From Macrostomum lignano (lineage: Eukaryota): a DNA stretch of 49,239 nucleotides. Made by a program: the position numbers and the translations under genes. The number at the start of each line of letters is the position of its first letter. The stretch's first letter is position 1. The notes beneath the pieces were generated by a model, which was given only the letters and a program-made list of their open reading frames with translations, ran no database searches and was not told where the DNA came from. Location of the stretch: assembly GCA_002269645.1 (NCBI GenBank), contig NIVC01001198.1:1-49239 (forward strand), written 5' to 3'. This document shows, in pieces, positions 6,628 to 38,381 of the stretch.

Positions 6628-8460
6628 TTGTTGGATAGACTCACTGCTGGGTAGTCTCATTGTTGAGTAGTCTCATTGTTGGGTAGGCTCATTGTTGGGT
6701 AGCCTCATTGTTGGATAGACTCATTGTTGGGTAGCCTCATTGTTGGATAGACTCATTGTTGGGTAGCCTCATTGTTGGATAGACTCATTGTTGGGTAGAC
6801 TCATTATTGGGTAGGCTCATTGTTGGATAGACTCATTGTTGGGTAGACTCATTATTGGTAGACTCAATATTGGTAGACTCAATATTGGTAGACTCATTAT
6901 TGGTAGACTCATTATTGGTAGACTCATTATTGGTAGACTCATTATTGGTAGACTCATTATTGGTAGACTCATTATTGGTAGACTCAATATTGGTAGACTC
7001 AATATTGGTAGACTCATTATTGGTAGACTCATTATTGGTAGACTCATTATTGGTAGACTCATTATTGGTAGACTCATTATTGGTAGACTCAATATTGGTA
7101 GACTCAATATTGGTAGACTCATTATTGGTAGACTCATTATTGGTAGACTCATTATTGGGTAGACTCATTGTTGGGTAGACTCATTGTTGGGTAGACTCAT
7201 TGTTGGGTAGACTCATTGTTGGGTAGACTCATTGTTGGGTAGACTCATATTGTTGGGTAGACTCATTGTTGGGTAGACTCATTTTTGAGTAGACTCAATG
7301 TCGGGTAGACTCAATGTTGGATAGATTCATAGTTGGGTAGTCTCATTGTTGGGTAGACTCATAGTTGGATAGACTCATAGTTGGATAGACTCATAGTTGG
7401 ATAGACTCATAGTTGGATAGACTCATAGTTGGATAGACTCATAGTTGGATAGACTCATAGTTGGATAGACTCATAGTTGGATAGACTCATAGTTGGATAG
7501 ACTCATAGTTGGATAGACTCATAGTTGGATAGACTCATAGTTGGATAGACTCATAGTTGGATAGACTCATAGTTGGATAGACTCATAGTTGGATAGACTC
7601 ATAGTTGGATAGACTCATAGTTGGATAGACTCATAGTTGGATAGACTCATAGTTGGATAGACTCATAGTTGGATAGACTCATAGTTGGATAGACTCATAG
7701 TTGGATAGACTCATAGTTGGATAGACTCATAGTTGGATAGACTCATAGTTGGATAGACTCATAGTTGGATAGACTCATAGTTGGATAGACTCATAGTTGG
7801 ATAGACTCATAGTTGGATAGACTCATAGTTGGATAGACTCATAGTTGGATAGACTCATAGTTGGATAGACTCATAGTTGGATAGACTCATAGTTGGATAG
7901 ACTCATAGTTGGATAGACTCATAGTTGGATAGACTCATAGTTGGATAGACTCATAGTTGGATAGACTCATAGTTGGATAGACTCATAGTTGGATAGACTC
8001 ATAGTTGGATAGACTCATAGTTGGATAGACTCATAGTTGGATAGACTCATAGTTGGATAGACTCATAGTTGGATAGACTCATAGTTGGATAGACTCATAG
8101 TTGGATAGACTCATAGTTGGATAGACTCATAGTTGGATAGACTCATTATTGGTAGACTCATTATTGGATAGACTCATAGTTGGATAGACTCATAGTTGGA
8201 TAGACTCATAGTTGGATAGACTCATAGTTGGATAGACTCATAGTTGGATAGACTCATAGTTGGATAGACTCATAGTTGGATAGACTCATAGTTGGATAGA
8301 CTCATAGTTGGATAGACTCATAGTTGGATAGACTCATAGTTGGATAGACTCTTAGTTGGATAGACTCATCATTGGTAGACTCATTATTGGATAGACTCAT
8401 TATTGGTAGACTCAAGTTGGATGGACTCAATTTCGGGTAGACTCAATGTTGGATAGACTG
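6628..8460. repeat. 15/16-bp minisatellite (TAGACTCATAGTTGGA and variants)
   Basis: More than 100 tandem units; homogeneous 16-mer core at about 7360-8360 and a 15-mer block at about 6850-7155. Confidence 0.95.
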
Positions 8461-12311: not shown

Positions 12312-13370
12312 CGAAGGACTAGTAGGAGCTAATGGAGGACTGGGAGGAGCTAATGATGGACTAGTAGGAGCTAATGGTGGACTAGTAGGAGCTAATGGTG
12401 GACTAGTAGGAACTAATGAAGGACTAGTAGGAGTTAATGAAGGACTAGTAGGAGCTAATGAAGGACTAGTAGGAGCTAATGGAGGACTAGTAGGAGCTAA
12501 TGAAGGACTAGTAGGAGCTAATGAAGGACTAGTAGGAGCTAATGGAGGACTAGTAGGAGCTAATGAAGGACTAGTAGGAGCTAATGAAGGACTAGTAGGA
12601 GCTAATAAAGGACTAGTAGGAGCTAATGAAGGACTAGTAGGAGCTAATGAAGGACTAGTAGGAGCTAATGAAGGACCGGTAGGAGCTAAAGAAGGACTAG
12701 TGGGAGCTAATGGTGGACTAGTAGGAACTAATGATGGACTAGTAGGAGCTAATGATGGACTAGTAGGAGCTAATGAAGGACTAGTAGGAGCTAATGAAGG
12801 ACTAGTAGGAGCTAATGAAGGACTGGGAGGAGCTAATGAAGGACTAGTAGGAGCTAATGGAGGACTAGTAGGAGCTAATGAAGGACTAGTAGGAGCTAAT
12901 GAAGGACTAGTAGGAGCTAATGAAGGACTAGTAGGAGCTAATGAAGGACTAGTAGGAGCTAATGAAGGACTAGTAGGAGCTAATGAAGGACCGGTAGGAG
13001 CTAATGAAGGACTAGTGGGAGCTAATGGTGGACTAGTAGGAACTAATGATGGACTAGTAGGAGCTAATGATGGACTAGTAGGAGCTAATGATGGACTAGT
13101 AGGAGCTAATGAAGGACTGGGAGGAGCTAATGAAGGACTGGGAGGAGCTAATGAAGGACTGGGAGGAGCTAATGAAGGACTAGTAGGAGCTAATGAAGGA
13201 CTAGTAGGAGCTAATGAAGGACTAGTAGGAGCTAATGGAGGACTGGGAGGAGCTAATGATGGACTAGTAGGAGCTAATGAAGGACTAGTAGGAGCTAATG
13301 AAGGACTAGTAGGAGCTAATGGAGGACTAGTAGGAGCTAATGAAGGACCGGTAGGAGCTAATGAAGGACC
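12312..13370. repeat. 21-bp minisatellite GGACTAGTAGGAGCTAATGAA
   Basis: About 50 tandem units; source of the artefact GLVGANE ORF. Confidence 0.95.
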
Positions 13371-13834
13371 TAGGCTCTTGTTACGCCGGTTCTGGCAAGT
13401 CCATCAAGACTACATTAAAAACAGTAAATCTTGTTTTTCAGTCTACCATATTCTGTTGCACAGTCGGATGCGTACGCAAGAATCACCCAGAAAGTTTTTT
13501 ACTTACTAGTATTATACGTACTCGTAGTAAAATAAATGGCAAAATGCGAGCTCAAACATCTGGGACAAATCCTCAAAAACGTTTGAGCCGAAATATTGGA
13601 CACGGAAAAGACACCAATTTATTTGAGTGGGTGGGCGGCTTCGCGAGGGCTCTGATTGAATTATTCATTGCAGCTGCCCTGCCGCTGGTGCGTCTCACTT
13701 GCTCACATTGTTTCTGAGAGCTGAAGCCGCCGCTGCCGCCTCTGTCTCACCACAGTGCTGGCTGATGGCAAAGGAAAACTAACTAAACCAAAATCTATTT
13801 GCACTCGGAGGTCTCGTGCTGTATACTATTTTTA

Positions 13835-20010: not shown

Positions 20011-20555
20011 TCGATGCTCATGAGAATGCTCGGTACTCATGAGATACCCATGATTTATTATATACTTCACGACCCAGCTAGGCTGATCACATCGCAAAAA
20101 AGGCTGAGCATAAAAAAAGTATGGGAGAAGTATTTGTCTACGAGATATATGCATGAATATCTAGAGCATACACGCCAATTTCATTGATTTGATGTGTTTG
20201 ATGAGAGTGTGTGTGTCGGAGGCAGGGAGGGGAGGTGATGAGGAAGCGAGAAAGATGGAATGGCTCTACCGGCCGAATCTGCCTCTATGCAGCCCCTGCC
20301 CTCTCCCTAACTATTTAGCATTGAATCGCCGCGCGAAGTTCTCACGCGATGGCTGATCAGCCTCGATAGCCTCTCAGGGCCGAGCACTAATCTATATAGC
20401 TAGCAGTATCCTGTGCCTTCTTTTATTCCCTCCTGATGCTGCTCAGGTGACCTGGTGCAGAGGAAATATTAGATGCATCTGATGGAATTGGAGTGCCACT
20501 CTGTACAATTAAATAATAGTACATTGAATACTGTTAAAATACATCACTCTCTCTC

Positions 20556-20930
20556 TTCCCTGTCTCCCTCTCCCTTCCCTGTAGCACTCTCCCTTCCCTG
20601 TAGCACTCTCCCTTCCCTGTAGCACTCTCCCTTCCCTGTAGCACTCTCCCTTCCCTGTAGCACTCTCCCTTCCATGTAGTACTCTCCCTTCCCTGTCTCC
20701 CTCTCCCTTCCCTGTAGCACTCTCCCTTCCCTGCCTCACTCTCCCTTCCCTGTAGCACTCTCCCTTCCCTGTAGCACTCTCCCTTCCCTGTAGCACTCTC
20801 CCTTCCCTGTAGCACTCTCCCTTCCCTGTAGCACTCTCCCTTCCCTGTAGCACTCTCCCTTCCCTGTAGCACTCTCCCTTCCCTGTAGCACTCTCCCTTC
20901 CCTGTAGCACTCTCCCTTCCCTGTAGCACT
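20556..20930. repeat. 19-bp minisatellite GCACTCTCCCTTCCCTGTA
   Basis: About 20 tandem units. Confidence 0.9.
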
Positions 20931-20983
20931 TTATCATACACCGTCTCCCAGCCACATACTCATTTTACCCTTTTTGTCTCCCG

Positions 20984-21110
<127 letters not shown>

Positions 21111-21824
21111 ATGACTGTTTGCACTCCTATAGAGGCCCATACAGTTCACTTGATCATACATGAACTTACGCCCCAGCACACATGAATGCGAAGTTTTGCA
21201 TCCGATATATATGACCTACCAGGGTAGCATAGCTCGGCTGCTTTTCCATGTATTCAAAGTCAACAAAAGAATTAGCAGTTTGAAAGTCTGGTCGCATACT
21301 GAATAGCTCTAAGTTCTGGTTGCATTGGTTTACCCTCGTACTATGGAAATTCACTCGCATTTTGTGTATATGATCGATGAGTAGTGCAGGATGGAGTTGG
21401 CCCAACCAGTGAGGATGTCAGTTGCTGTGAACTTTTCCAGGCTAAACAAATTTGTTGAGCCGATGCCAGGAGAGAATTCTAGCTTAATCCAATAGTTGCC
21501 TGACAAAGATTTTTGCTAATACTCGTAGATTGTTATCTGGTTTGGTCGGCAACTCATTTGATCCTCGATGTCATATCTGATGTCTACAATAAGCTGATTT
21601 AAACTCTTTGTTATTTCTTTAATTTTTAGGTGATGAAGGTAAACGATGGAAACTTTTCTATACTGAATCTTTTTTTGTAATTTTTCCTCAAATTTAGTCC
21701 TGCGATGCCTTGCGTATCGCATGCGCAGCGCTTTCCTATTTTAACGGTTTATTACTCCAGCCTTGCTGAAGCACTTGCAATTGTTAAATGGCACACATCA
21801 GGTCCCCAAAGTAGCACGCATCAG

Positions 21825-22623
21825 GCCCCAAAAATGACACTCATGAGATCCCCAAAATGGCACCCAACAGATCCCCAAAATGGCATCCAACAGATCCCCA
21901 AAATGGCACCTAACAGATCCCCAAAATGGCACCCAATAGATCCCCAAAATGGCACCCAACAGATCCCCAAAATGGCACCCATCAGATCTTCAAAATGGCA
22001 CTAATCAGATCCCCAAAATGGCACTAATCAGTTCCCCAAAATGGCACTCATGAGATCCCTAAAATGGCACTCATGAGATCCTTAGAATGGCACCCATCAG
22101 ATCCTCAAAATGGCACCCATCAGATCCTCAAAATGGCACCCATCAGATCTCCAAAATGGCACCCATCAGATCCACAAAATGGCATCTATCAGATCTCAAA
22201 AATGGCACCCAATAGATCCCCAAAATTGCACCCAACAGATCCCCAAAATGGCACCCATCAGATCTTCAAAATGGCACTAATCAGATCCCCAAAATGGCAC
22301 TAATCAGTTCCTCAAAATGGCACTCATGAGATCCCTAAAATGGCACTCATGAGATCCTTAGAATGGCACCATCAGATCCTCAAAATGGCACCCATCAGAT
22401 CCTCAAAATGGCACCCATCAGATCCTTAGAATGGCACCCATCAGATCCTCAAAATGGCACCCATCAGATCCTCAAAATGGCACCCATCAGATCCTTAGAA
22501 TGGCACCCATCAGATCCTCAAAATGGCACCCATCAGATCCTCAAAATGGCACCCATCAGATCCCCAAAATGGCACCCATCAGATCCACAAAATGGCATCT
22601 ATCAGATCTCAAAAATGGCACCA
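21825..22623. repeat. 23-bp minisatellite AAATGGCACCCATCAGATCCTCA
   Basis: Tandem units with block duplication of variants. Confidence 0.9.
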
Positions 22624-23061
22624 ACAATTCGATTCACTCAACACCGTAATTTTTTTTCAAATACGAGCTAAATATGATTTGTTAACGTTATGCATATGCA
22701 TCACATCCATAAATTTTCTGTTCTGCTTGGATTCGAAATAATAATAATAATATATTTGCACAAAGTCTACTAACACATTTTATTCCCACCTATCAAATCG
22801 CACCTGTGAGTCAATCAATTTGATTAATTTTATTCAGCTTAAAGCAATATTAAAAAGTTAAACTTTAACTTTCTACATACTATTCGCTGGATATTAAGAG
22901 TAATTCTTGTGCTTTAAATGAGTCCAATTTGCTATTATCACTTTCGCTTAAAACTTTTTTTATAATTTAATTTTGCGCACCTGACATACCAGTATATAGC
23001 TGCACTAAAATAACATATTGCACTTTCAAAAGTATAAAAATAAAACCGTCGCCGCACGCAG

Positions 23062-23142
23062 ACGATGGCCGCTCAGAAAAGAAATCAACTTGGCGCGTCT
23101 CTGGCCTTGGCCGCCAGGCAGAGTCTCAACGACGAAGAGCTG
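23062..23142 (+). CDS. unc-13: unc-13 exon TMAAQKRNQLGASLALAARQSLNDEEL
   Basis: Resembles the invertebrate Unc13 TMAAxKRN...LNDEEL segment just before C1; cag|...|gtgagt, phase 0/0. Confidence 0.88.
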
Positions 23143-23424
23143 GTGAGTCAGTGCTTAACTGGGAGAATTCCACCATGATTGGGGAATTCCCATTGATATG
23201 ATTTATTGTCAGAATTTATTGAATCCAATTCGATCATTATTATTAAGGAATCCCTATGTGGCCATCATTAGAGAATCCCATTTATGACCTTTGGAAAATC
23301 CCTATATCGTTTTGATAGGGAATTCCAACCTCCATGAAGAACGACCCCTTTGATAGGGAATCCCAAATGCCATTATTGAGAAATCTCTAGACTGCCTTGA
23401 TGGGAAGCCCCATCAACCAGAATC

Positions 23425-23890
23425 CTATCCGCTATGAGAGGGGAATCCTATCCCGTCTATCCTCTATGAGAGGGGAATCCTATCCCGTCTATCCTCTATG
23501 AGAGGGGAATCCTATCCCGTCTATCCTCTATGAGAGGGGAATCCTATCCCGTCTATCCTCTATGAGAGGGGAATCCTATCCCGTCTATCCTCTATGAGAG
23601 GGGAATCCTATCCGCTGTGAGAGGGAAATCCTATCCGCCATGAGGGGGGAATCCTATCCGCCATGAGGGGGGAATCCTATCCGCCATAAGAGGGGAATTC
23701 TATCCGCCATAAGAGGGGAATCCTATCCGCCATGAGAGGGGAATCCTATCCGCCATAAGAGAGGAATCCTATCCGCCATGAGAGGGGAATCCTATCCGCC
23801 ATGAGAGAGGAATCCTATCCGCCATGAGAGGGGAATCCTATCCGCCATGAGGGGGGAATCCTATACGTCATTAGGGGGAATCCTATCCGC
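23425..23890. repeat. compound 32-bp/23-bp minisatellite (ATGAGAGGGGAATCCTATCC core)
   Basis: 32-bp units switch to 23-bp units that share a core. Confidence 0.9.
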
Positions 23891-23985
23891 CATAAAAGAG
23901 GAAACCCCTCTGTTGTGAAAGAAAAACCCCATAAGTACGAGCGTACGAATAGACGTTAAGAAATATTCGCATTCTCACCCAACAG

Positions 23986-24273
23986 AAGTCGCACGTGTAC
24001 AAGAAAACTCTGCAGGCAGTCTGCTACCCAATCAGCTGTACAGTGCCGCACAGCTTTCAAGTTTGGTCGGCCACCAGTCCCACCTACTGTCACGAGTGCG
24101 AAGGCCTGCTGTGGGGCATCGCCCGTCAAGGCGTCCGCTGCAGCCAGTGCGGGGTTAAGACGCACGAGAAATGTAAAGACCTGCTGAATGCCGACTGTCT
24201 GCAACAGGCGGCTGAGAAATCCTCCAGACACGGAGCCGAAGACAAGTCGGCCGCGATTCGGCAAGCGATGCAG
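23986..24273 (+). CDS. unc-13: unc-13 C1 (DAG/phorbol ester-binding) domain exon
   Basis: [50 protein letters not shown] retains all Zn ligands of the Munc13 C1 domain. Confidence 0.97.
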
Positions 24274-24459
24274 GTGAGATGGTCATTCGTAATTTGATAA
24301 TATTGGAGGAATGCAGGCTTGAGGGCCTAATGGGGCGGAAGTAATGAAGCAGGACTGACTAAGAGTGGAATCTATCTGGTTCCTTTCTGATATCCGATAT
24401 TGGGAAGCTAATAAACAACTCTTTTTCTGCAGTGGGTACTGCCACTATCCACTGTCTTT

Positions 24460-25124
24460 AAGTAAATCTGGTCACTACCCACTGTCCTTCAGTAGGTCTG
24501 GTCACTACCCACTGTCCTTCAGTAGGTCTGGTCACTACCCACTGTCCTTCAGTAGGTCTGGTCACTACCCACTGTCCTTCAGTAGGTCTGGTCACTACCC
24601 ACTGTCCTTCAGTAGGTCTGGTCACTACCCACTGTCCTTCAGTAGGTCTGGTCACTACCCACTGTCCTTCAGTAGGTCTGGTCACTACCCACTGTCCTTC
24701 AGTAGGTCTGGTCACTACCCACTGTCCTTCAGTAGGTCTGGTCGCTACCCACTGTCCTTCAGTAGGTCTGGTCACTACCCACTGTCCTTCAGTAAGTCTG
24801 GTCACTACCCACTGTCCTTCAGTAGGTCTGGTCACTACCCACTGTCCTTCAGTAGGTCTGGTCACTACCCACTGTCCTTCAGTAGGTCTGGTCACTACCC
24901 ACTGTCCTTCAGTAGGTCTGGTCACTACCCACTGTCCTTCAGTAGGTCTGGTCACTACCCACTGTCCTTCAGTAGGTCTGGTCACTACCCACTGTCCTTC
25001 AGTAGGTCTGGTCACTACCCACTGTCCTTCAGTAGGTCTGGTCACTACCCACTGTCCTTCAGTAGGTCTGGTCACTACCCACTGTCCTTCAGTAGGTCTG
25101 GTCACTACCCACTGTCCTTCAGTA
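24460..25124. repeat. 30-bp minisatellite GGTCACTACCCACTGTCCTTCAGTAGGTCT
   Basis: About 22 nearly identical units. Confidence 0.97.
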
Positions 25125-25209
25125 TACACTAATAACCCTAGAATTTCATTTTAGAATCCTAAAAATTATCTGAAAAATGCGAAAAAATAACATATTTTGC
25201 ATCTTGCAG

Positions 25210-25511
25210 GAGAGAATGCAATCTAGAGAGCAAGCTCGACCAGAAGTATTCGAGCTCGTCCGTCGAGTATTCGGTGTCGACGAAGCGAGCCATCGGGAGC
25301 AGCTGCGCGCGGTACAACTCTCCATTCTAGAGGGCAGCAGCAACTGGAGCGCCAAGATTGCCATCACTGTGATTTGCGCGCAGGGTTTGATAGGCAAAGA
25401 TAAAACTGGCACCTCCGACCCCTACGTCACTGTGCAGGTGGGCAGGCTGAAGCGTCGAACAAAGACTGTTCCGCAAGAATTGAACCCAACCTGGAATGAG
25501 AAATTCTACTT
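25210..25511 (+). CDS. unc-13: unc-13 C1-C2B linker and first half of C2B
   Basis: [33 protein letters not shown]...LNPTWNEKF is Munc13 C2B; cag|...|gtgagt. Confidence 0.97.
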
Positions 25512-25591
25512 GTGAGTGAAAAGTACTTTTCGACTATATAGAATAGAAGAACGTACTAAATTAAGCTACTTTTTTCATCACTTGATTACAG

Positions 25592-25633
25592 CGAGTGTCA
25601 CAACTTTTCCGACCGAATCAAAGTTCGAGTTTG
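25592..25633 (+). CDS. unc-13: unc-13 C2B short exon (ECHNFSDRIKVRVW)
   Basis: Near-identical to Munc13 ECHNSSDRIKVRVW; phases fit. Confidence 0.95.
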
Positions 25634-25717
25634 GTAAGTCGATTCCATTTTATTAAATGTACGAGCTGACTAAATGTTGATTATCAGGAGCTTGGAGCAG
25701 AAAGCAGTGTGTTACAA

Positions 25718-26012
25718 GCTGAGATTTGTGTCTTTAACTGAGATTGGTGTGTCTGTAGCTGAGATTGGTGTGTCTGCAGGTGATATTGGTGTCTTTAGTT
25801 GAGATTGGTGTGTCTGCAGCTGATATTGGTGTGTCTGTAGCTGATATTGGTGTGTCTGCAGCTGAGATTGGTGTGTCTGTAGCTGATATTGGTGTGTCTG
25901 TAGCCGCAGAGATTGGTGTGTCTATAGCTGTGATAGGTGTGTCTGTAGCTGAGATTGATGTGTCTGTAGCTGAGATTGGCATGTCTGTAGCTGAAATTTG
26001 TGTCTGTAGCTG
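25718..26012. repeat. 21-bp minisatellite AGCTGAGATTGGTGTGTCTGT
   Basis: About 14 degenerate units. Confidence 0.9.
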
Positions 26013-26308
26013 AGTGTGTCTGTAAGATATTTGGTATTAAAAGTTGATGATGGATACTTTTTGTAGACTAATTTTTGTCTGCGCCTAATATTTTCCAGGA
26101 AGTTCAATTTTGATTTCATTAAATTTAAAGACACGCTTTGTTTGCTTAAAAGGAAAGTACAAGTAGTAATTCATTTTTGGCTTTCATTAGTTCGTATTCG
26201 CAATTGCGTACGATTACTATTTGAAAGACAAGTTACTGAGGTCTGTCAGATTAGCTCCTAAAAAGAAAAGTGCCCAATAACACCCAAAAAATTGCTATGA
26301 TAAAAAAG

Positions 26309-26436
26309 GGACGAAGACAACGATCTGAAGTCAAGAATTCGTCAACGACTCACCAGAGAGTCCGATGATTTTCTCGGTCAGACTCTGATCGAAGTTCGCA
26401 CTCTATCGGGCGAGATGGACGTCTGGTACAACCTGG
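26309..26436 (+). CDS. unc-13: unc-13 C2B loop-3 exon, variant A
   Basis: [42 protein letters not shown]; 128 nt; aag|...|gtaggt. Confidence 0.9.
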
Positions 26437-27702
26437 GTAGGTTGGCCACTCCCCTAACCCGATTGTCTCTCCACTAACTCACCCGGTTGCTAATAACTGT
26501 GTTAACTAACTCTACACGTGAGTTAAAACCCAGTTCTCGAAATCTCTTCTCGCTACTGCTAGTCTACCTGCCAAGTCAAACCGAAAAATGTCTGTCTTTA
26601 TGTGTACACTGTAGTTACGTCTTTGCACTTCTCTAATATCGTGTGTCTAATAAGACGGGCAACTTTGACACAGTGTTCGAGTGTTAATTGTCTGACGCAA
26701 GATATTACGTGTGGCCGAAGTGAAGTTCAATGATTTGGGGTTAATGGGGTGGAGGCTAACGGGCCGACCAGAAAATCGATAACGGTACACCATCAAGTTT
26801 ACAATTCGGGGGGTTGGCCCAGTCAAAAGCTACGCTGGTATAAAGTGGATTGGAAAGATCGGGGCTAAGTGGGGTGGGGGGTCAACGCGCCGACCAGAAA
26901 ATCGATAACTTAACACGCCCAGGCTAAATGAACAGCGGCAAAAACTATTGTAGCAAAGCGCGCCTGCCCATCGTGGATAAAAGGTTTGGGGTAAAGGGGT
27001 TTAACGGGACCGACAAAAAATCGATATGACATCCACCCAACTCACACGCCCAGGCTAAAGAATGCAAGTCAACTTGAGAAGACAGTGTCTAGTGTGTGAC
27101 AACACTGTTTGGGGTAGACCGCTGAAGGGTTCTTAATTCCATGCCCCGTCCTATAGTAAGTCCAGAAAAAGACTGAGGCTAGAAAAAGTAAAATAGGAAC
27201 TAATCTCCTTTCGCATCATTCATACCTTTTGAAAAATTAATCAGTTTAAATGCAATTTAAATTCGATGGTAAGAAAACCTTATTTACGGCTATTCTGGCT
27301 TATTCTCAGGACACACGGTACTCCTATGTTGTTTTAGATTTTTGAGGTTGCACCTTGCTTTTCGGGTTTTGCATCTGTAGCTGAAAAAACCGAATCCCGA
27401 AAGGCAAAGGAAATTGAAATGATAAACATATCGAATGATAGACTGCTGTAACCATTTTATTTTTCTAGCAATTTCAGTAGCCAATTTCAGTTGCTAATTT
27501 GTATTCAGTACGTTTTAGAAGAGTTTTTTATCGTGTTTCATACTTCCTGTGATACTCGTACCTATAGCGATAGCGTGGACTTAAAAACAACAATTAAAAA
27601 TATTTCTTTTTGATTCCAAATTAAGCTAGAAAGACTGACAGACCTTTAAAAAGGTAGCTACTCGTAGTCAAATACGCACTCTGTCGCCTATTCAATAATC
27701 AG

Positions 27703-27830
27703 GGATGAGGACAACGACCTGAGGGCTCGAATCCGTTCAAAGTTAACGTCCGAGTCGGACGACTTTCTCGGTCAGACAATGATCGATGTGAGCAAATTGT
27801 CCGGCGAAATGGACGTCTGGTACACTCTCG
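27703..27830 (+). CDS. unc-13: unc-13 C2B loop-3 exon, variant B (mutually exclusive with A)
   Basis: [42 protein letters not shown]; 128 nt; cag|...|gtaggt; same phases as A. Confidence 0.9.
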
Positions 27831-28324
27831 GTAGGTTGCAAGTGGACCCAGCTTGAATCGGCTGTGTTGCTAAGAACCAACTATCGAAGTTTAGGCATTA
27901 TGGTTAGGCAGAAGTTTTAGTTAACAATACAAACTATTAAACACTTTGATGCTTCCTTAAAGCCTATTTACTATATTTGTTCTGTCATTTAATGTTGTAA
28001 ATATTTCTTACATTTTTATACATTGTCAAATATGCATGTAGCTACGCTAGGCAGTTGTTTTGCAACAAGACGACTGGTAAGGATATGAATGACATCTATT
28101 TTATGGAAATTTGTGTCAGGCTAGTATTTTATCTCGAAAAGCCTGAGAAATACATGTACTACATTGGAGACTAATTAGCAAGCGTGATTTTATAAAAACT
28201 TACTTATAACTTTCTACACATCCTGTTACATTATAAATGTTATAAAATATTTTATTGCTTGATACAAAACTTCGGAACTTGCTTAGAATCAGTGCAATAT
28301 TATTTCGTTTTCTACCGGTTTTTT

Positions 28325-29280
28325 TTGTGCAGCAGGATCACGCCAGATTCCAGCAGACCAGGGCGCTTCTTTCGTATTGCTGGGCGCAGCTTCTCCTGCA
28401 GAATCCAGTTGTAGTAGTCCCCATTGACGGTGGTTCCTTGTGGGACTGCCCAGTTCAGCAGGATTCCTTGGGAATCAAAAAACATGACGTGCATGATCTT
28501 TATCGCGCCCTGCTTCCTGATGCCCTTCTGAGGTCTTGGAGAATGTGCTGGAAGCCATTCGGCAGACTGGGCCTTTGTCTCAGGATCCCAGCTGTAAACC
28601 CACGTCTCGTCTCCAGCAACAATTCTTGATAGAAAATCCTCCCCTTCTCGATGGAACCGACGCAGGTGGCTGCTTGAAGCCAGAGTTCGCTGCATCTTTT
28701 GCTCACCTGTCAGCAGGTGTGGCACCCACTTGCAGAACTTTTTCTGTAGGAGAAGACGCTCAGTCAGAATAGTGTGGACGCTTCCTACTGACACACCAAC
28801 GTCTTCTGCCAACTCTTCGCAAGTCCGTCGCCGATCATCATCCAAGAGCTCTTGCACTTTCTTCACAACAGTCTCTTTGGTTGCAGTCATCGGCCTTCCA
28901 GAGCGGCCATTGTCCTCAACGCTCTCTCTTCCCTCAGCGAACAGCCGGTACCATTTTCGAACTGTCTGCTCAGTTGGTGCACAGTTGCCAAGCACTTGCT
29001 GAAGCTCCCTAAACATATCCGGTGGCTTTTTTCCTTGCAGAAACTGAAACTTCATCAAGCTTCGAACGTCATGCTTTGAAAATGATTCAGCCATGGCCAA
29101 GAAATTGAGTGGCAGCTGATAGAAATGTTCGCTGCTCTAACATAGTTGCAAACTGAGACTTAAAACCCTAGGAACGTTTAGGCCATAGACATAACTTGGT
29201 AAAATCGCTAAAATTCAGTTTACAACGCTTTCTAAAAATAAATGCCAAAGGACCGAAAAGAACTTTTTGAATAAACCTCG
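28325..29280 (-). mobile_element. mariner (Tc1/mariner) transposon, 3'-truncated, irritans/Hsmar2-like TIR
   Basis: The ORF at 28312-29100 has HTH regions, WVPHLL and IVAGDETWV, and ends at ILLH just before the second catalytic Asp. The 5' TIR reads TA|CGAGGTTTATTCAAAAAGTT on the minus strand at 29282-29261. No second TIR was seen. Confidence 0.92.
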
Positions 29281-29503
29281 TAGTATTTTTCCCAATTGTA
29301 AAGTTGCTAAACTTGGGAATCAAACTCCGATCAAACGCATTACAACTGATGTTCGGACATGCCCCGTATTACCTGTGCATTTTGAAACGTAATTAAGCCT
29401 CTAGAAAATCTGAAAAACTTCTCTTTGCTCCCAATGGTCCATACCTGTACAGAAAACAGTTGCGTTTTATTTTTTGCAATACGCTCGTAACTATTCACTT
29501 CAG

Positions 29504-29619
29504 AGAAGCGAACGGACAAGTCGCTGGTGTCGGGCGCTGTGCGATTGCACATCAGCGTGGAAATCAAAGGCGAAGAGAAGGTCGCGCCGTATCATGTGCA
29601 GTACACCTGCTTGCATGAG
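29504..29619 (+). CDS. unc-13: unc-13 end of C2B exon
   Basis: [39 protein letters not shown], conserved in Munc13. Confidence 0.97.
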
Positions 29620-30025
29620 GTGAGGCTCGATATTTGCATATTTTACTCGTTCAAACAATTTCTTTTCACTCGTTTAAAAATGGATTAAAAGTTAAAATGA
29701 TACCATTAGCTAAGGGAGATCGACAAACTGAGTTCTTCAAATTTGTCTGGTATATTTTCTCAAAACGGATTGCCAGATAAATATCTCTCCCTATCGTCTC
29801 AAGAACAATTTAAGAACGTTCTTAAGTCGTTATTTTATTGCCTGTTGAAATAAGATCTCTTAAAAGTCCATTTCGTGATATGCAAAGTAAATGCCTGTTG
29901 CTAGATATGTCTAGCTCGTATTTATATTTAATTAAAATATAGATGTCTTAAAACCTTAAAACAAGAGTCTCCAGGCATGACACTACACACTACGAGCGTA
30001 CACTATTCACGAACCAAACTTACAG

Positions 30026-30207
30026 AACTTATTCCACTACATGTGCGAGACATCGAAACAGGATGGTAAACAGGAAGTCCGACTGCCCAGACAAGCCATC
30101 GGACGAGGCGAGAATGCGTGGAAAATCTACTTCGAAGCTGAGATGCAAGAAATCGTGGACGAGTTTGCGATTCGATACGGCATTGAGAGCATCTATAGAG
30201 CGATGAC
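30026..30207 (+). CDS. unc-13: unc-13 C2B-MUN linker exon
   Basis: NLFHY...AWKIYF...[21 protein letters not shown]; cag|...|gtgagt. Confidence 0.96.
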
Positions 30208-31794
30208 GTGAGTGAAAAATGCTCATTTGTTTATTTAATCGCAGTGATTTGCTAATTAAGTTGGTTGAATACACTGTCTGACCGTGATGCTCTACATGTA
30301 TGCTTTGTTAAAATGCTTCGTACAATTATTTCCCTGTTTTGCGAAGCTATTTCATCTTGTCTAAACTTTCGATAGTACGTTTGGTAGCCACGCCATTTGA
30401 CTGTTGACCACTTGAATGCCACCGATCAAGTACATCTATCTACCTTGCCTTCTTACTTGCACGCCAGATTTCCCGTGTACATGACATGTTGGGCTTGTAA
30501 GGGTGCATCTTAAAACGAATTTAGGCAGTGATCCTTTGGTGAAAAAAATTTCTTCCAATATCTTAGAAACAAAAGTGCATCGTTTTCAGGAGAAGCAATC
30601 AATTTAATAAGCTAAGGAAGTTCACAATCGTTATACGAAAAATATGCAAGATTGACATTGAGTACTACAGTGTAATCTGGATGTTCCTGCCCTCTCGTTA
30701 ATTCCTCTCTCCCTCTTTCTTATCCTTATCCTGCATGAGTTCTGAGAACACTTGCTGTGTATATGAATGCTTTGTATTCTGTACAAATATTTCTATCCGC
30801 TGCCACTTTCATTCTGGGCGATGCGTCTATTGATCGATCCGTTATTATAAGACAGAATCCAGGGAGAGGGAGGAGGAGAGAGAGAAGGGGGAGCCAAGGC
30901 GCGGAAAGAATTTCCTGGTCAAATTTCTCCTCTGCTCAACCGCGCCCATAACAGTTCCTGTTCTCTCCTGACCGCTACAGCATCCCCTTTTTTCTGTTCA
31001 TTCTTTCTCCTCTCACCGCGCTTCTCCCTCTGTGATGCCCCGCAAGCAGCTGCAGCCTCGTTTTATCATTTATTCTTGGCCTATCGTCAGGCCTCTCAGA
31101 AATCTCTTGCACTCTGTCTCTCTCCCCATCGGAGCCACTTCAGTACCTCTTCTATAGCCGATCCATTGGTTGATTCGGGTTTCGCACTAGAAATGCAATA
31201 CTGCAGAAAAAACCGAATGTCAAACACATTCAACGTGTTTTACGTTCAGTTCAATTCATCTATACTGAACCCACTGCCAGGCGCTAGACAAAGGCTGCAG
31301 AGAAATCGTTAACAAAGATGACGATTCTGTGTAGTTTTTGCAACCCAATTATCTTGTATGCATTGAACTTCAATCGGGTTGGAGTAAAATTTTCAGTAGA
31401 ACTACTAGCAATCTAGTGCCCCTTTTGGGGCGGCCAATGATCAAGGGACGAAAATTATTTACGTGAATCCTTTTAAGAGACAAAGACAAATTTTCTTAAA
31501 AGCATTCATTCTTCAGTTTCGTAAATCACATTGTTCGAGAAAATTTATCAGGGACAAAGATTTTGGAGAGCTAACAAAAAATGAAATACACTGGTGGACA
31601 TTGAAGAGATCCACTACTACTGTTCAGTAGTGTATTATTGCACACTATTATTCCTTCGATATAGTGCGCAATTAAATAATATCGTTACCCGCTCGGGATG
31701 CAAGTTGCGTAACTTGCAGTTGCGATCGGAGAGAAAAAGAGGATACTTTTCAAAGTCCAGCGTTTATTTTTAAATAAGCTACATGTAGCTTCTG

Positions 31795-32170
31795 ACTACT
31801 CAGCTTTGACATCTCAGCAATTCCCCCCGTAAGCCTTGACATCTCAGCAATTCCCCCTGTAATGACTCGGGAGTCAGTATTGATTTTGCAGTGCGAAAAC
31901 GCTTGGCCCTCCAAGAAGGGTGAGAGTGCCTATATATATTTGGGCCCTCAGGCCTCAGCCAATCATGTGTGGCAACGTTGGGATAAAAGGCATAAAAGAG
32001 GAGAGGTAAGCCGTGCAGAGTACAGTAAAAGAGTACAGTGAGTGAGCACTCCGCACTGCTAGGCACCCCGTTTAACAACAACAATTGAGTGCAGGGCTGC
32101 GGCATGACACCCCATAAGCTGTGACTTCTCAGCAATTCTCCCGTAAGCCTTGACATCTCAGCAACTCCCC
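31795..32170. repeat. 30-bp tandem repeat TGACATCTCAGCAATTCCCCCCGTAAGCCT, split by a solo LTR
   Basis: About 2 units on each side of the insertion. Confidence 0.8.
31858..32109. mobile_element. putative solo LTR (252 bp)
   Basis: TGTAAT...ATGACA termini, CCCC target-site duplication (31854-57 and 32110-13), internal TATATATA; it interrupts a tandem repeat. Confidence 0.7.
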
Positions 32171-33024
32171 CCGTAATACTCAATGTCAGCAATACTAAAT
32201 GTGTTATGTGTAACGGTGGCGTCACTGGAGCAAATAGCGCATGCTGATGTACACTCAGCAACATGTTAAAGTTTCCACCCCAAGATCTGTTGGTCAACAA
32301 GTAGCAGCTTTAATTCAACTTAGCCATAAAAGCTCATTCACACTGCCCATCTGACTGATGAGCAAGCAAATCACACGACCAATGCACAAAGAAATCAAAT
32401 TTGATGTTAAGTTGTGTGATCACACAAAAAGGGCCTTATATGATAGTGGTGTGAACGAGCATAAACTTTCTAGTCTCTCCTCACCAGCCTAAGCTAGGTC
32501 TTGTTACGCAAAGTTCATCACCCGCAGTCGAGACGAAAACCGCGCGCGTGTAGTGTGAATTGCGTCAACTTGGAGCTGAAATCTGAGAACAGTTGACCAC
32601 TGGTTTCGGGGTGGTCACAAACTTTAATATGTTGCCGGGTGTACATTCAATGTACGCTGCCGTCTAACTATTTCTACCCCCAGTTTTGTGTACCCTCTCT
32701 CCCAGCCTCAGCGCGGGCTCTAATTGGCTAAAGGTTGATTTATATTCGCTGACCAACAAGAGTCAGCCAATTGTTTGGCAGTCCAATTTGTTTACGAAAA
32801 ATGACCAATCTGAGCCTCACCGTGCCAGTCTGTCTTGGCGAGCGTAGGAGACTGTCTGCCTGCGAGCTGCAACATGCACAGCAGCAGCAGCAGCAGCAGT
32901 TGCAGATTAATCCAGTTGAACCTAGACGGCGCAGCATAGCTGTGCCTAGCGTCGCATCTTCCGAGACCGAATCACCGTCGCATTCAACCTCGTCCCCGTT
33001 GCCGTTCAACTCTCCATCTTTCAG

Positions 33025-33334
33025 GCATTTCTCCTGTCTGACAACAAAATCGTTGTGCACCGGCGTGCCAGCCGTGATGTCCAATCTGCTTGCTAACATC
33101 AACGCATTCTATGCGCACAGCGCCACCGGGAATTCCGTCAGCGCTAACGACCGTTTCGCGGCGTCCAACTTTGGCAAAGAGAAGTTTGTGAAACTATTGG
33201 ATCAGCTGCACAACTCGCTACGAATCAGTTTATCAGTGTACCGAAACTCTTTCCCCGCCTCTCAACCTGAGAAACTGTTGGATCTGAAATCAACAGTGGA
33301 TCTGCTCACCAGTATTACTTTCTTCCGGCTCAAG
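33025..33334 (+). CDS. unc-13: unc-13 MUN-region exon
   Basis: HFSCL...[19 protein letters not shown]...[26 protein letters not shown]...[18 protein letters not shown]. Confidence 0.97.
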
Positions 33335-33737
33335 GTGAGATGCGTTTTGATTTGATTTGATTTTTGATTTTTGTTTTATTTTCAAGTATTATCAAGGTTT
33401 TTAGCTATAGGGCCTCAAAGACGGGGAAACGTCCTTAAGTTTCTGATTTGACTTGTAATCAATGTATACATACTCGTAGAATTCAGATTGAGGTGTCTAG
33501 CGGCCACAAATGCAAAAAAATCGAAGTGTCCGTTAGGAAAAATAGAATTGCCTCAATTTTAGGCGTAAACAAGTTGATGTGAATTTCGAAACAGATCTTT
33601 TTGTAGTCATACTCGTATATAAAATAAGTCTCGACAGACTTTTGTTCTTCTCCGGTCACTACGATTAAATTGAAGGGGTCTTTTAATTAATTAACTAGAA
33701 ACGAGAAAATAGCAATTCACTTTCTCCCAATTCGCAG

Positions 33738-34157
33738 GTTCAAGACGTAGGCAGCGTGCCTCGAGCGGGCAGCGTACTGAAGGAGTGCGCACTCAACTGC
33801 TTGAAAACCACGTATCAGTTTCTGTTTGAAAACTGCAACGAATTGCACCAGCGGGAGTTCCCAGCAGCAGCTGCGGCCGCAGCAACAGAGGGGGCGTCGG
33901 AGTCGGCTAAGTCGGGCCCTTCGCCGGACTCTCTGGACTTTTGGCACCGACTGATCGAGCTGGTGGTGTCGGTGATCGAGGAGGATCGAAACAGCTACGC
34001 CCCGGTGCTAAACCAGTTCCCTCAGGAGGTCCACATTGGCCAGCTGAGCGCCTCCGCAATGTGGGATCACTTTAGTCAGGATTTGATGTACGCTCTGCAG
34101 GAACACGAAGAGAAGAGGCCGTGCAAAACGTCCGAGTACATGAACCTGCTGTTTAAG
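33738..34157 (+). CDS. unc-13: unc-13 MUN (MHD1) exon
   Basis: LDFWHRLIELVVSVIEEDRNSY...QFPQE...YMNLLFK. Confidence 0.96.
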
Positions 34158-34483
34158 GTGGGCTTCTGTGGATTTAGATTTTTCCTTAATGATTTCTGCG
34201 CACTGTAAGTGTGACCTTTGAGCACAGAACTAGATTTGTTACTATCCTATTTTCAATTTGGCGTCTGTTTTGGGTTCGCATAAATTTTTCATTGGTTCGG
34301 AGCTTCTGTCTATGGCCAAATATGACAGATCGGTGGTCTCGTCTCGAAACTGGACCATCTTTGATCCATAGTGAATCAAGCCGTTTTGTTGTGCCAGCCT
34401 GAGTTACGTATTTATTATTTTTATGAAATCTCGTTATGCTTTGTCATAAGGCCTTAAATGATAATGTAAAAATTTCACTACAG

Positions 34484-34635
34484 GTGAAGTGGCTCTACAA
34501 CAAATACGTGGCAGACGCTCCGCCGCACAAAGGCTCCGTACCTGGCTATCCACTCTGGTTCCAGCCGTTCGTACTGCAGTGGCTAAGCGAGAATGATGAA
34601 GTCTCCATGGAGTATCTGCACAGCGCCTATGCTAG
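34484..34635 (+). CDS. unc-13: unc-13 MUN exon
   Basis: VKWLYNKYV...WFQPFVLQWLSENDEVS. Confidence 0.96.
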
Positions 34636-35207
34636 GTAAGGTTTTGAACTATATAGTTTGCAAGTCAGTTTCAGTTATTTCAACTTCTCACTAGATCATT
34701 TGAGAGGTTGCAGCGCACAGAATGAACAGCAGCGGTATTACTCGTAGATAACCCACCAAGACGAATGTCGACCCTCGGCTCACAAGGTGCCAGTCACGCC
34801 GATTCTTGAGCTCGCCCACGCTGATATGCGTAGACAGGCCCTGACTTTCTCGTCGTCTCGCATGTACACTCTCCGAGCCTTGGGGTAGTCCTCAATCGCA
34901 CCAGCCCTGGTCAATATTCGTTGCACCTCCCCAAATCTATTTACGAGCTATGTACTTGCATGCAATCGAATCTGGGTACTACGAGTATATAGCTGTGCCA
35001 CTCTCCCCCCCCCTCCCCGATTATAGACTTATCTTTGATTTTACTATTGAAGCCTCAATTTGCACAAGTGTATCATTCAAAATGAACATTTGAAATAACG
35101 AAACTCATTGTTTGTAGCGACTCACTTCTAATAAGACCCAAAATGACAACTTTTAAGTAAAAGTCGCGAATTTGTTTATGTAATATTGTTTTTTTCGCAA
35201 TCAACAG

Positions 35208-35553
35208 AGACCGGAAAGACAGCTTTCAAAAGAGCTCAGACCACGCACTGTTCAGCACGTCTGTTGTTGACGTATTTACTCAGCTCAACCAGTGCCTAGA
35301 TGTAGTGAAGAAGCTGGAATGTCCAGATCCAGCAGTTGAAGCCGCTTTCATGAGTCGATTCAGCGGCACAGTTGTCAAAGTTCTATTCGCGTACGCCAAC
35401 ATCATCGCTAAAGACTATGGCAACTTTACTAGCCAGTCTGGCAAAGCCTGCGTGCTTATGAACAATGTGCAGCAGGTTCGAGTGCAACTGGAGAAACTCT
35501 ACGAAGCCATGGGCGGCCAGGCCATGGAAGCTGAGACCAAGGACAAGCTACAG
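35208..35553 (+). CDS. unc-13: unc-13 MUN exon
   Basis: HALFSTSVVDVFTQLNQ...KKLECPDP...LMNNVQQVRVQLEKLYEAMGG. Confidence 0.96.
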
Positions 35554-35916
35554 GTAATAAATTTTTCAATTGCAAATTTTGTGTTTGCTTAATTGTAGCT
35601 TCTTTCGTGATTACGTGATAATTAGGACATTTCAAATAATAAAAAGCTTTAATGCTAAAAGAAAAAAATGACTACAAGTACAACATACAACAAGAACTAG
35701 TAGATATCGGCACCAAAAATGGAGACCGGACGGGAGTAATACTTCAGATCAAACCGTCCATTTCTTAGTCAACTGGTCCGACAAGTTATCGATCGCAGTG
35801 GGTTTAACTCGAAGCTTTACTTCTCGGCTCCACTCCGGCGCTTAAGCCCTTTTTCATTAGAAGACAAAAAGCAAAGTCTTTAGTGAAAACCCTCGAGACC
35901 CCTACAACCTCTGCAG

Positions 35917-36264
35917 GAGCTGCAAGATCGACTGAATACCGTACTGGACGATCTGGCGGCGAGATTCGTTGCTACAAAATCTAGCGAAATTGTCGCTGCA
36001 GTCCGTGAGGTCGGCTGCCTGCTGCACAAACACGTGCGCGGTGGAGCCGGCAGCAGTGGCGGTGGGTCAGGAAGCACAGATCCGCAGGCGGAGGCTGATA
36101 TGATACTGCGGCCACTGATGGAGCTTTTGGACTCGTCTCTGGGCATGCTGGCTGTCGAATGCGAGAAGGCAATTCTCAGGCGACTCTTGAAGGAGATGTG
36201 GCGTGTCACCGTGGCGGCTCTGGAGAAGGAAGTTGTGCTGCCACCAATCAGCGATCCTAGACAG
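35917..36264 (+). CDS. unc-13: unc-13 MUN (MHD2) exon
   Basis: LRPLMELLDSSL...CEKAILRRLLKEMW...VVLPP. Confidence 0.95.
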
Positions 36265-36490
36265 GTGAGCAGTTTTTAGAAGCGCTTAGTTACCGAGCAA
36301 ACTTTATATAAACAAAGAGGCAATGTCCCCTTTTTTAATTTAAAGTTTTACACCAAGTTTACAGAGCAAACTAATTTTACTTGAGCAGCATAACGTTTGC
36401 CACTTGATTGAGTTTTCAGCCAATCATGATTTTATGTTTAGGACGCAGCCTCAGAGCCACGGCTACTAGTCTTCCATAATCAAATTTCAG

Positions 36491-36634
36491 CTATTCCTCA
36501 ATCTGAGCATCCCAGCTAAGGCCAAAGTGGCCGGCGTTAGCCAAGGCCTGCTAAGCAACATCTCCAGCATATCAACCCAGGTGTCCAATGTAACATCCGT
36601 GCCAAATATTAGCAACGTGTCTAACCTGTTGCAG
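36491..36634 (+). CDS. unc-13: unc-13 MUN variable-loop exon
   Basis: tttcag|LFLNLSIPAKAKVAGVSQGLLSNISS...NLLQ|gtaaag; phase 0/0; lies at the position of the variable loop after VLPP. Confidence 0.7.
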
Positions 36635-37200
36635 GTAAAGCTAAGAGGCGCGGGATTACAGAAAATAGCGTTGCCGAACGTCGCACCTAGTCTTGCTCAC
36701 TTGATCCATGTTGTTTTGCACTTATGGAGATCGCAAATTTCCATAGATCTCTGGCTATTTATTTACTAACAGTAGCATCGAGAGATATACACAAATCTTT
36801 GCCAATCGGCGATCTTATCTACATGAATGTTGTGTCTTTAGTCATTTGATTTGTCTGTCGCCTTTAATCTCCTATTGCTTTCAGTTAAACTTTCGTCCAG
36901 CAGCTTGTATTTCAAGCAAATCCCTTTGCTTGCTTATGCTGTCTAGCATCCAACCCAGACCCTTAATATGAGTATAGTGCCATTTCTATTTTTTCGTTGC
37001 CGCAAATGCGCAAAATGTGCCGTTATTTTTCTATTTACGGTGTCTTTCTCATGAGTTAATCTTTATTATTGCACTATATTTCACCGTTTGTAGGAGTTTC
37101 GTTTGACACTACAATATTCATCCATTCTTGCATTCCAGCTACATGTCAGCGACAATAGCTTGCACTTTTAACCTTTTTAAATATCCTCTCCAATCAACAG

Positions 37201-37685
37201 GACACTCTATCAAAGGATCTAGAGAAGACTATGTCTCCCAGGCAGTGCGCAGCGATCCAGGTAGCCCTAGAAACTGTCCGGCAATATTTCCACGCTGGCG
37301 GCAACGGTCTAAAGCTGGCTTACCTGGAGAAGAGCGCCGAGTTGCAGTCGTTGCGCTACGCCTTGTCGCTTTACTCTCAGACGACCGATTCGCTTGTGAA
37401 AACGTTTGTAGCAACACAGGCTGGCCAGGACCGGCCGGCGGTAGACGAACCTGTCGGCGAGGTGTCAATCCAGGCGGATCTTTTCAGGCATCCTGGCTCG
37501 GGCGAGGTCAAGGTCACTGTTAAAGTCGTTGCAGCTAATAAGCTTCAATGGGACACCAGCTCAATGTTTCGACCGTTTGTTGAGGTTAACTTGATTGGGC
37601 CGCATCTGAGCAATAAGAAGCGCAAGTTTACCACGAAGTCCAAGAATAATTCGACATCGCCAAAGTACAACGAATCGTTCAGTTT
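37201..37685 (+). CDS. unc-13: unc-13 MUN end and first part of C2C
   Basis: SPRQC...[11 protein letters not shown]...[11 protein letters not shown]...[26 protein letters not shown]. Confidence 0.97.
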
Positions 37686-37736
37686 GTAAGAAAAGTTTTT
37701 TCTGTGCAAATTTTTCTGTTTTGATAGTTTATAAAC

Positions 37737-37978
37737 GGACCTTTGGAAACGTAGGGACCTTCGGAAACGTAGGGACCTTTGGAAACGTAGGGACCTTTGG
37801 AAACGTAGGGACCTTCGGAAACGTAGGGACCTTCGGAAACGTAGGGACCTTCGGAAACGTAGGGACCTTCGGAAACTTAGGGACCTTCGGAAACGTAGGG
37901 ACCTTCGGAAACGTAGGGACCTTCGGAAACGTAGGGACCTTCGGAAACGTAGGGACCTTCGGAAACGTAGGGACCTTC
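37737..37978. repeat. 18-bp minisatellite GGGACCTTCGGAAACGTA
   Basis: About 13 units in the last intron. Confidence 0.92.
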
Positions 37979-38079
37979 GCGATGTTCAAGACCTCTAGAA
38001 ACCATCAGGACCTACTGGATCTTCGGGAGCTTTGCTATTCGCTATTGGAACCTTATTTCAATAGAATTCATTCCCTCAG

Positions 38080-38381
38080 CATTCTGGGCACTATTGAGGA
38101 TCCCGAAGCATTCGAGCTGCAGATTAGCTGCAAAGATTATTGCTTCGCTCGAGATGACCACCTGATCGGCGTCACAGTGCTACAGATCAAGGATATCATC
38201 GAGCAAGGCAGCTGCGCCTGCTGGTGCCCTGGGCCGAAAGCTGCAGCTCGATGAGACCGGCTGGACAATCCTTCGAATTCTGTCGCAACGGCCTAACGAC
38301 GAGATTGCGGCCGAATTTGTTCGGCTGAAATCGGAGCAACGGCAGGACAATCCGCACGGCCTTTGGCTGGGCAAAAGTTAG
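38080..38381 (+). CDS. unc-13: unc-13 terminal C2C exon, with a frameshift at about 38228
   Basis: [14 protein letters not shown]...GSCACWC, then in a shifted frame [36 protein letters not shown]...stop TAG at 38379-81. Confidence 0.92.

Follow-up and report, generated by a model that had tools for sequence, protein, structure and literature searches.

Does the unc-13 gene of the flatworm Macrostomum lignano encode the same membrane-binding loop twice, so that each mRNA has to choose between two versions of it? The question is raised by contig NIVC01001198.1 (assembly GCA_002269645.1), analysed here over its full 49,239 nucleotides (nt), referred to as the window, in which two homologous exons, A and B, stand in tandem within the region for the C2B domain. 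The two exons go back to an old tandem duplication of the exon for C2B loop 3, its membrane-inserting amphipathic helix and the two beta-strands that follow, and each mRNA most likely carries exactly one of them, which would yield two UNC-13 isoforms.

The window contains a complete unc-13 (Munc13) gene with the architecture C1-C2B-MUN-C2C. Specifically, rat Munc13-1 C1C2BMUNC2C (PDB 7t7c, 5ue8) aligns to the concatenated conserved open reading frame (ORF) segments in nine collinear matches (E = 0), and Pfam C1_1, C2 and MUN are found on homologues of the window gene. An earlier sequence-only reading of the window had placed the exon pair in the C2B domain of Unc13, and this assignment is borne out, the gene being a genuine unc-13/Munc13 orthologue. 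The NCBI model of the contig is P0262 (BOX15_Mlig034388g1), and an Rfam scan of the window returned zero matches. The parts of the gene on which the argument depends are listed below in window coordinates; a slash marks an exon boundary in splice-site notation.

23062-38378, plus strand: conserved part of unc-13 (C1, C2B, MUN and C2C exons), by exact mapping of UniProt model P0237 and the 7t7c/5ue8 match
25210-25511, plus strand: exon for the N-terminal half of C2B (Ca2+-binding loop 1 region); GT/AG junctions reproduce P0237, and the product aligns to Munc13-1 C2B
25592-25633, plus strand: constitutive 42-nt exon, (F)ECHNFSDRIKVRV(W), whose last 2 nt are the start of a Trp codon; donor TTG/GTAAGT
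26289-26308, plus strand: purine-rich weak 3' splice site of exon A (..gctatgataaaaaag/)
26309-26436, plus strand: exon A, 128 nt, canonical-type C2B loop 3, helix, beta6 and beta7
26437-26444, plus strand: donor of exon A, GTAGGTTG; a further GT lies at +5/+6
26437-27702, plus strand: intron between A and B, 1266 nt, holding a ~126-nt repeat three times
27703-27830, plus strand: exon B, 128 nt, alternative C2B loop 3, helix, beta6 and beta7
27831-27838, plus strand: donor of exon B, GTAGGTTG, the same as that of exon A; a repeat designated D4 ends here
29504-29619, plus strand: constitutive downstream exon, opening with (E), last C2B strand

A and B are the only exons between the constitutive exon that ends at 25633 (..GTT TG/) and the one that starts at 29504 (/AG AAG CGA, encoding EKR). 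The first base of each is the third base of the Trp codon, and the last base is the first base of the Glu codon. That the two exons share length, phase and donor, as the sequence-only reading had it, is confirmed: both measure 128 nt, are preceded by AG and are followed by GTAGGTTG at the coordinates listed. Spliced between the flanking exons, either A or B gives an open frame (..RIKVRVW DEDND...WYNL or WYTL EKRTDKS..). Because 128 is not a multiple of three, joining both exons through the canonical donors leads to a stop after 'GMRTTT', and inclusion of neither leads to a stop right after 'VRV'. The acceptor of exon A, described earlier as unusually purine-rich and weak, is indeed the weakest among the 13 mapped acceptors of the gene, with 35% pyrimidine at -20 to -4 and the sole AAG, and that of exon B is ordinary for the gene and stronger. 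The donors of both are GTAGGT; every other donor of the gene is of the GT[AG]A/G type. Apart from this shared donor, the introns of A and B are unrelated. The A-B intron also contains the ~126-nt unit (..CGGGCCGACCAGAAAATCGATAAC..) in three copies at 26746-27059, maybe a small repeat family, and a 21-nt minisatellite unit is present in at least 12 copies just upstream of exon A.

How old is the second copy, and has it been kept by selection? The encoded peptides are identical at 32 of 42 positions (76% in amino acids, 71% in nucleotides), and 16 of the 32 shared residues use different codons, exactly as counted before. The differences fall on codon positions 1, 2 and 3 in the numbers 9, 6 and 21. 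Synonymous sites are saturated (proportion of synonymous differences, pS, 0.77) at a non-synonymous proportion (pN) of 0.148; comparisons of the Macrostomum exons with their counterparts in other species give a pS of 0.92-1.12, slightly above the A-B value. In neutral simulations starting from A, none of 200000 sequences reached 32/42 identity without a stop at either 50% or 77% per-site difference, and 2/200000 did so at 30%. Together with the third-position bias, these values uphold the view, already taken in the sequence-only reading, of an old duplication under purifying selection. A tblastn search with A against the whole window recovers B (E = 9e-20) and no further copy.

The two types diverge at a small set of positions. 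The substitutions from A to B are K7R, S8A, Q12S, R13K and R16S in the helix, and E28D and RT to SK in the beta6-beta7 region, so the differences first described, in the basic segment and at EVRT vs DVSK, are exact; the net charge of the helix is +4 in A and +3 in B. Exon A is nearly identical to the pan-bilaterian consensus, and its greater closeness to vertebrates is also upheld, with rat Munc13-1 matching A at 35/42 positions and B at 26/42. Exon B, in turn, holds an open frame of exact length, AG/GT sites and the animal-invariant residues (DEDxD, E.DDFLGQ, L.G, W).

The strongest evidence on this point is that of the paralogues. M. lignano has three unc-13 paralogues (P0237; P0238/P0240; P0239) that are 77-80% mutually identical, and in the predicted proteins each of them has an A-type and a B-type copy in tandem. 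The A copies differ from one another at 1-2 of 42 positions. All B copies have R7, S12, S/T16 and K31 in common, as well as a helix with net charge +3, and those of the paralogues are free of stops and indels. The second copy, whose absence from close relatives the sequence-only reading would have counted against it, is thus present there, as all three diverged paralogues keep A and B with type-specific residues. In a neighbour-joining tree of the exon copies, based on 42 residues, bootstrap support is 78% for a group of the three B copies, 60% for one of the three A copies and 12% for one of all Macrostomum copies. Since both types occur in every paralogue and group by type, the duplication predates the split of the paralogues, with B maintained independently three times.

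What would the choice of exon change in the protein? The exon covers D757-L798 of rat Munc13-1 (numbering with the first chain residue of 5ue8 set to 529), namely the loop-3 ligands D757/D759, an amphipathic helix, R769, the SDD motif and the pair of strands that follows. The hydrophobic side chains of the loop-3 helix insert into the membrane and its basic residues bind head groups; the helix, together with R769, touches the plasma membrane and influences priming, short-term plasticity and the probability of release, and the R769E mutation impairs priming and Ca2+-independent membrane binding (PMC8648301). The DEDND and ESDDFLGQ columns are invariant in the exon block taken from 119 full-length unc-13 proteins, and A and B both keep these acidic motifs, in line with the earlier claim. 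Also kept in both are the hydrophobic helix positions L6, I10 and L14 and a basic residue at position 13, the equivalent of R769 (R in A, K in B). In B, the arginine equivalent to R772 is lost, Q768 is replaced by S and the beta6-beta7 turn is altered. The isoforms would thus share the Ca2+ ligands and the hydrophobic face of the helix and differ in polar or basic helix positions and in beta6-beta7. Pfam C2 scores of 89.0 bits for the A isoform and 91.4 bits for the B isoform indicate that both fit the domain equally well. With the hydrophobic face and the R769-equivalent basic residue both kept, the chemical difference between A and B is modest for the two priming-sensor chemistries that the sequence-only reading conjectured, and a modest difference in membrane or phosphatidylinositol 4,5-bisphosphate (PIP2) affinity is plausible. 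The choice between the exons may be regulated, and the isoforms may differ in membrane/PIP2 binding and release probability.

How might the use of exactly one exon be ensured? Either/or use of A and B in M. lignano, which we infer, would be enforced by the reading frame, and nonsense-mediated decay (NMD) would presumably clear mRNAs with both exons or neither. Competition between splice sites is a further probable factor, given an A acceptor that is the weakest in the gene and two exons with the same sub-optimal, UAGG-containing donor. The identity of the donor GGUAGGUUG on both exons, although the introns are otherwise unrelated, suggests constraint on it; UAGG is the core of hnRNP A1-type silencers. 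Other mechanisms found no support, which leaves the frame (with NMD) and splice-site competition as the proposed enforcement. Steric exclusion was rejected, as the A-B intron of 1266 nt is too long, and so was U2/U12 incompatibility, as both donors are GTAGGT (U2-type) and not [AG]TATCCTT. Among the inverted repeats in 25634-29503 is a 19-nt, 79% match of the A acceptor region with 27456-27474; the best duplex energies of the A and B acceptor regions with the introns, however, were equalled by 10/60 to 37/60 shuffles, and docking/selector RNA pairing was rejected as evidence.

The same exon has been duplicated elsewhere. Most animals have a near-invariant 42-residue consensus in the block; bivalves have alternative versions. 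In Mya arenaria, RefSeq isoforms X8/X10 contain the consensus block and X3/X14, from the same contig and with identical flanks, another one, so that the proteins compared (P0276/P0277 vs P0298/P0315) differ in the 42-residue block only. Models of Mercenaria, Dreissena and Mactra contain related 'RKAFTPEPD..AQLCGEMT' versions. In the genome of Mytilus coruscus, a pair of 128-nt copies with AG/G...G/GT boundaries stands in tandem at a distance of 121 nt (L004 41073-41198 and 41322-41447); model P0242 wrongly fuses the two, truncating both. An isoform of M. trossulus uses the second Mytilus copy, isoforms of M. californianus use the first, and a Magallana gigas isoform is of the second type. The canonical Mytilus copy lies upstream and has the weaker acceptor of the two; the gastropod Lottia has one copy. 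Bivalve unc-13 resembles that of M. lignano in the same exon of 128 nt and 42 codons, the same AG/G...G/GT boundaries and, in Mytilus, the tandem arrangement and the weaker acceptor upstream, and isoforms with one or the other exon are annotated in RefSeq (a database annotation). It differs in the intron between the copies, which has 121 nt in Mytilus vs 1266 nt in M. lignano.

A common origin of Macrostomum B and the bivalve alternative exons is not supported (bootstrap 0.2-3.6%). The bivalve alternative exons form groups of their own at 81% and 95% and join Macrostomum B at 0.2%, and this exon seems to have been duplicated independently in bivalves and in Macrostomum. The changes in all alternative copies fall on a common set of sites, namely helix positions 12-16, E28D and RT at 30-31; in rat numbering, the few positions concerned are Q768, R772, E784 and R786/T787.

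Within flatworms, in a small sample, a single copy lies between the same flanking exons at each of three genomic loci, namely that of the cestode Dibothriocephalus latus, that of the trematode Schistosoma mattheei and one on a second, cestode-like contig (L006). For the comparison with other flatworm and spiralian loci that the sequence-only reading proposed, this means one copy in two cestodes and in S. mattheei, and alternative versions in bivalves. In Schistosoma, the exon resembles A. That of cestodes, present also in Rodentolepis nana and on several further contigs, shares R7, S12, S16 and D28 with Macrostomum B, and cestode sequences are the top matches of an exhaustive search with exon B.

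L001 10703-10828; L006 4735-4860; L003 717-842; protein P0357: cestode single C2B loop-3 exon with B-type helix signature, where Schistosoma has the pan-bilaterian consensus

Macrostomum B and the cestodes group at 57.5% bootstrap. Together with the shared residues, this may point to an earlier origin followed by differential loss; on 42 residues it is a lead, and convergence is the alternative. It is conceivable, if rather doubtful, that the A/B pair dates to the base of the rhabditophoran flatworms, with cestodes having kept the B type only and schistosomes the A type only. If true, several natural variants of the C2B loop-3 helix exon would be at hand, and, with two independent bivalve duplications at the same positions, selection would have acted repeatedly on this exon as a means of tuning release probability and the membrane binding of UNC-13.

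How does this picture stand against other explanations of the locus? One of them, that the second copy is an assembly artefact from a collapsed or misjoined paralogue or allele, draws some credit from the repeat-rich, partly polyploid genome of M. lignano and from a probable assembly indel in the window at 38226. It is exceedingly improbable, and its dismissal in the sequence-only reading was sound: the copies are 71% identical in nucleotides and have unrelated introns, model P0237, from an independent assembly, has the same two exons, two further paralogues show the same arrangement, and each copy differs from every paralogue copy of the opposite type. A duplicated pseudo-exon, with B spliced in never or negligibly and functional UNC-13 made from A alone, is improbable as well, although A is far more conserved than B, the UniProt model P0238 of paralogue 2 contains A only and transcript-derived support for B is absent among the protein-search matches. 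A neutral copy would not survive in the state in which B is found, as the simulations indicate, with its open frame, exact length, AG/GT sites and all animal-invariant residues; synonymous sites between A and B are saturated at a pN of 0.15, B-type copies are intact in three paralogues that are ~22% diverged, and the acceptor of B is stronger than that of A.

One-of-two splicing itself has several observations to contend with, some of which would favour the inclusion of A and B together. The claim that both or neither shifts the frame stands with canonical donors and fails for a GT 4 nt downstream of the A donor: GTAG/GT at 26437-26442 supplies a second donor, through which A (132 nt) and B (128 nt) are in-frame via a 'GR' linker, and the frame argument is for this reason not absolute. 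UniProt models P0237 and P0239 contain A and B joined in this way, as a C2B with a 44-residue internal duplication, and the linker can also be built in paralogue 3. NCBI model P0262 begins downstream of C2B and is silent on both exons; the Macrostomum matches of the protein search, sampled at about query length only, are gene models, with no transcript-derived protein across the exon; and the B copies of the paralogues are known from predicted proteins only, not from genomic splice sites. B also evolves faster than A, with 4-8 of 42 differences between B copies (10-19%), near the average of the whole protein, and constraint on B is weaker than on A. Double inclusion is nonetheless very improbable. 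An AlphaFold model of P0239 (shallow alignment of 35 sequences; mean predicted local distance difference test score, pLDDT, 69) has a helix at exon positions 6-14 in copy A and at 5-14, with low confidence, in copy B, and builds one C2 fold from the helix and beta6 of copy A and beta7 of copy B, with residues 244-288 (~45) left apparently disordered at pLDDT 25-34. Exon B has the same GTAGGT, where the +4 shift would destroy the frame, so double inclusion leaves the motif unexplained; the homologous bivalve exons are used singly in RefSeq isoforms; and a genuine tandem duplication at this place occurs in 0/114 of the non-Macrostomum unc-13 proteins examined, P0242 truncating both of its copies. 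The double-inclusion models P0237 and P0239 are regarded as annotation artefacts typical of tandem exons, and the use of exactly one exon per mRNA remains the preferred account.

The window has further features of its own. In the last coding exon (38080-38378), two bases are missing at 38226-38227 relative to P0237 (TGC GCC to TGCC); the frame of the window ends early as a result, P0262 follows this truncated frame, and the universally conserved C-terminus is intact in the next frame. Either the assembly has an indel here or the allele is really a truncating one. A 144-nt exon at 36491-36634 (LFLNLSIPAKAKVAGVSQG...SNVSNLLQ) is included in P0237 and skipped in P0262, and is probably a cassette exon at a variable loop position of the MUN domain. 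The start of P0262 (32771-33055) extends, in frame, upstream of the exon that begins at ~33026, and could reflect an internal promoter for a MUN-C2C-only isoform without C1 and C2B, or a retained-intron artefact. The intron between B and the downstream exon holds, on the minus strand at 28312-29100, a 262-residue ORF for a mariner/Mos1-type transposase (Pfam HTH_48, Transposase_1). A 387-residue ORF at 47855-49018, also on the minus strand, has weak integrase-like Pfam matches (rve_3 and Integrase_p58_C, both under the cut-off) and is probably a retrotransposon remnant downstream of unc-13. On the plus strand, a 983-residue ORF at 2986-5937 (60-65% GC) is of low complexity (Ala/Ser/Pro/Gln-rich, with repeated MATQPAxSP) and has zero Pfam matches; it may be a long N-terminal exon of unc-13 or a separate gene. 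Intronic minisatellites lie at 25698-26024, 24365-25132, 37721-38000, 6817-7178, 12700-13509, 20509-20955 and 21705-22671, and the minisatellites of the window give long spurious ORFs in several frames.

The findings have consequences for both annotation and experiment. Public gene models of M. lignano appear to be wrong at this place, as UniProt fuses both copies and NCBI omits the region. The alternative versions in Macrostomum, and those that arose at least twice in bivalves, present evolution-vetted variants for biophysical and rescue work. In a literature search, neither mutually exclusive splicing of unc-13/Munc13 nor splicing within its C2B domain turned up, and for Macrostomum likewise nothing of the kind. 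The bivalve case is already implicit in RefSeq isoforms, and no paper describing it was found. Mutually exclusive exons in presynaptic C2 domains are, as a kind, already known, and unc-13 is a new case.

Among known systems, exons 5a/5b of SNAP-25 and the exon pairs of Nav/Cav channels are the classical neuronal mutually exclusive pairs, in which exon use often depends on the cell type and adjusts release or excitability. They consist of two homologous adjacent exons of equal length and phase, one per mRNA, and the Macrostomum pair appears to have the same layout. The difference lies in enforcement, which in Macrostomum seems to depend on the reading frame and splice-site competition, RNA pairing being not above chance. 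Another neuronal mutually exclusive exon pair, that of C. elegans unc-32, is cited in PMC12084633. Closer in function are the mutually exclusive exons that alter C2 domains of Syt1, Syt34 and Esyt2 and that arose repeatedly in invertebrates (Craxton 2010, PMC2823689). There, as in A and B, tandem duplicated exons re-specify part of the C2 domain of a presynaptic or membrane-contact Ca2+/lipid-binding protein; the gene family and the C2 elements are different ones, and unc-13/Munc13 is not among the genes reported in PMC2823689. UNC-13 isoforms with different release properties have been described, namely UNC-13L/S, Munc13-1, ub/bMunc13-2 and Drosophila Unc13A/B (PMC11991699). All isoforms described so far differ at the N-terminus through alternative promoters or first exons, whereas the A/B pair alters the core Ca2+/PIP2-binding loop of C2B. 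Munc13/UNC-13 is the essential synaptic vesicle priming factor, and an exon switch within this loop would diversify synapses in a different way.

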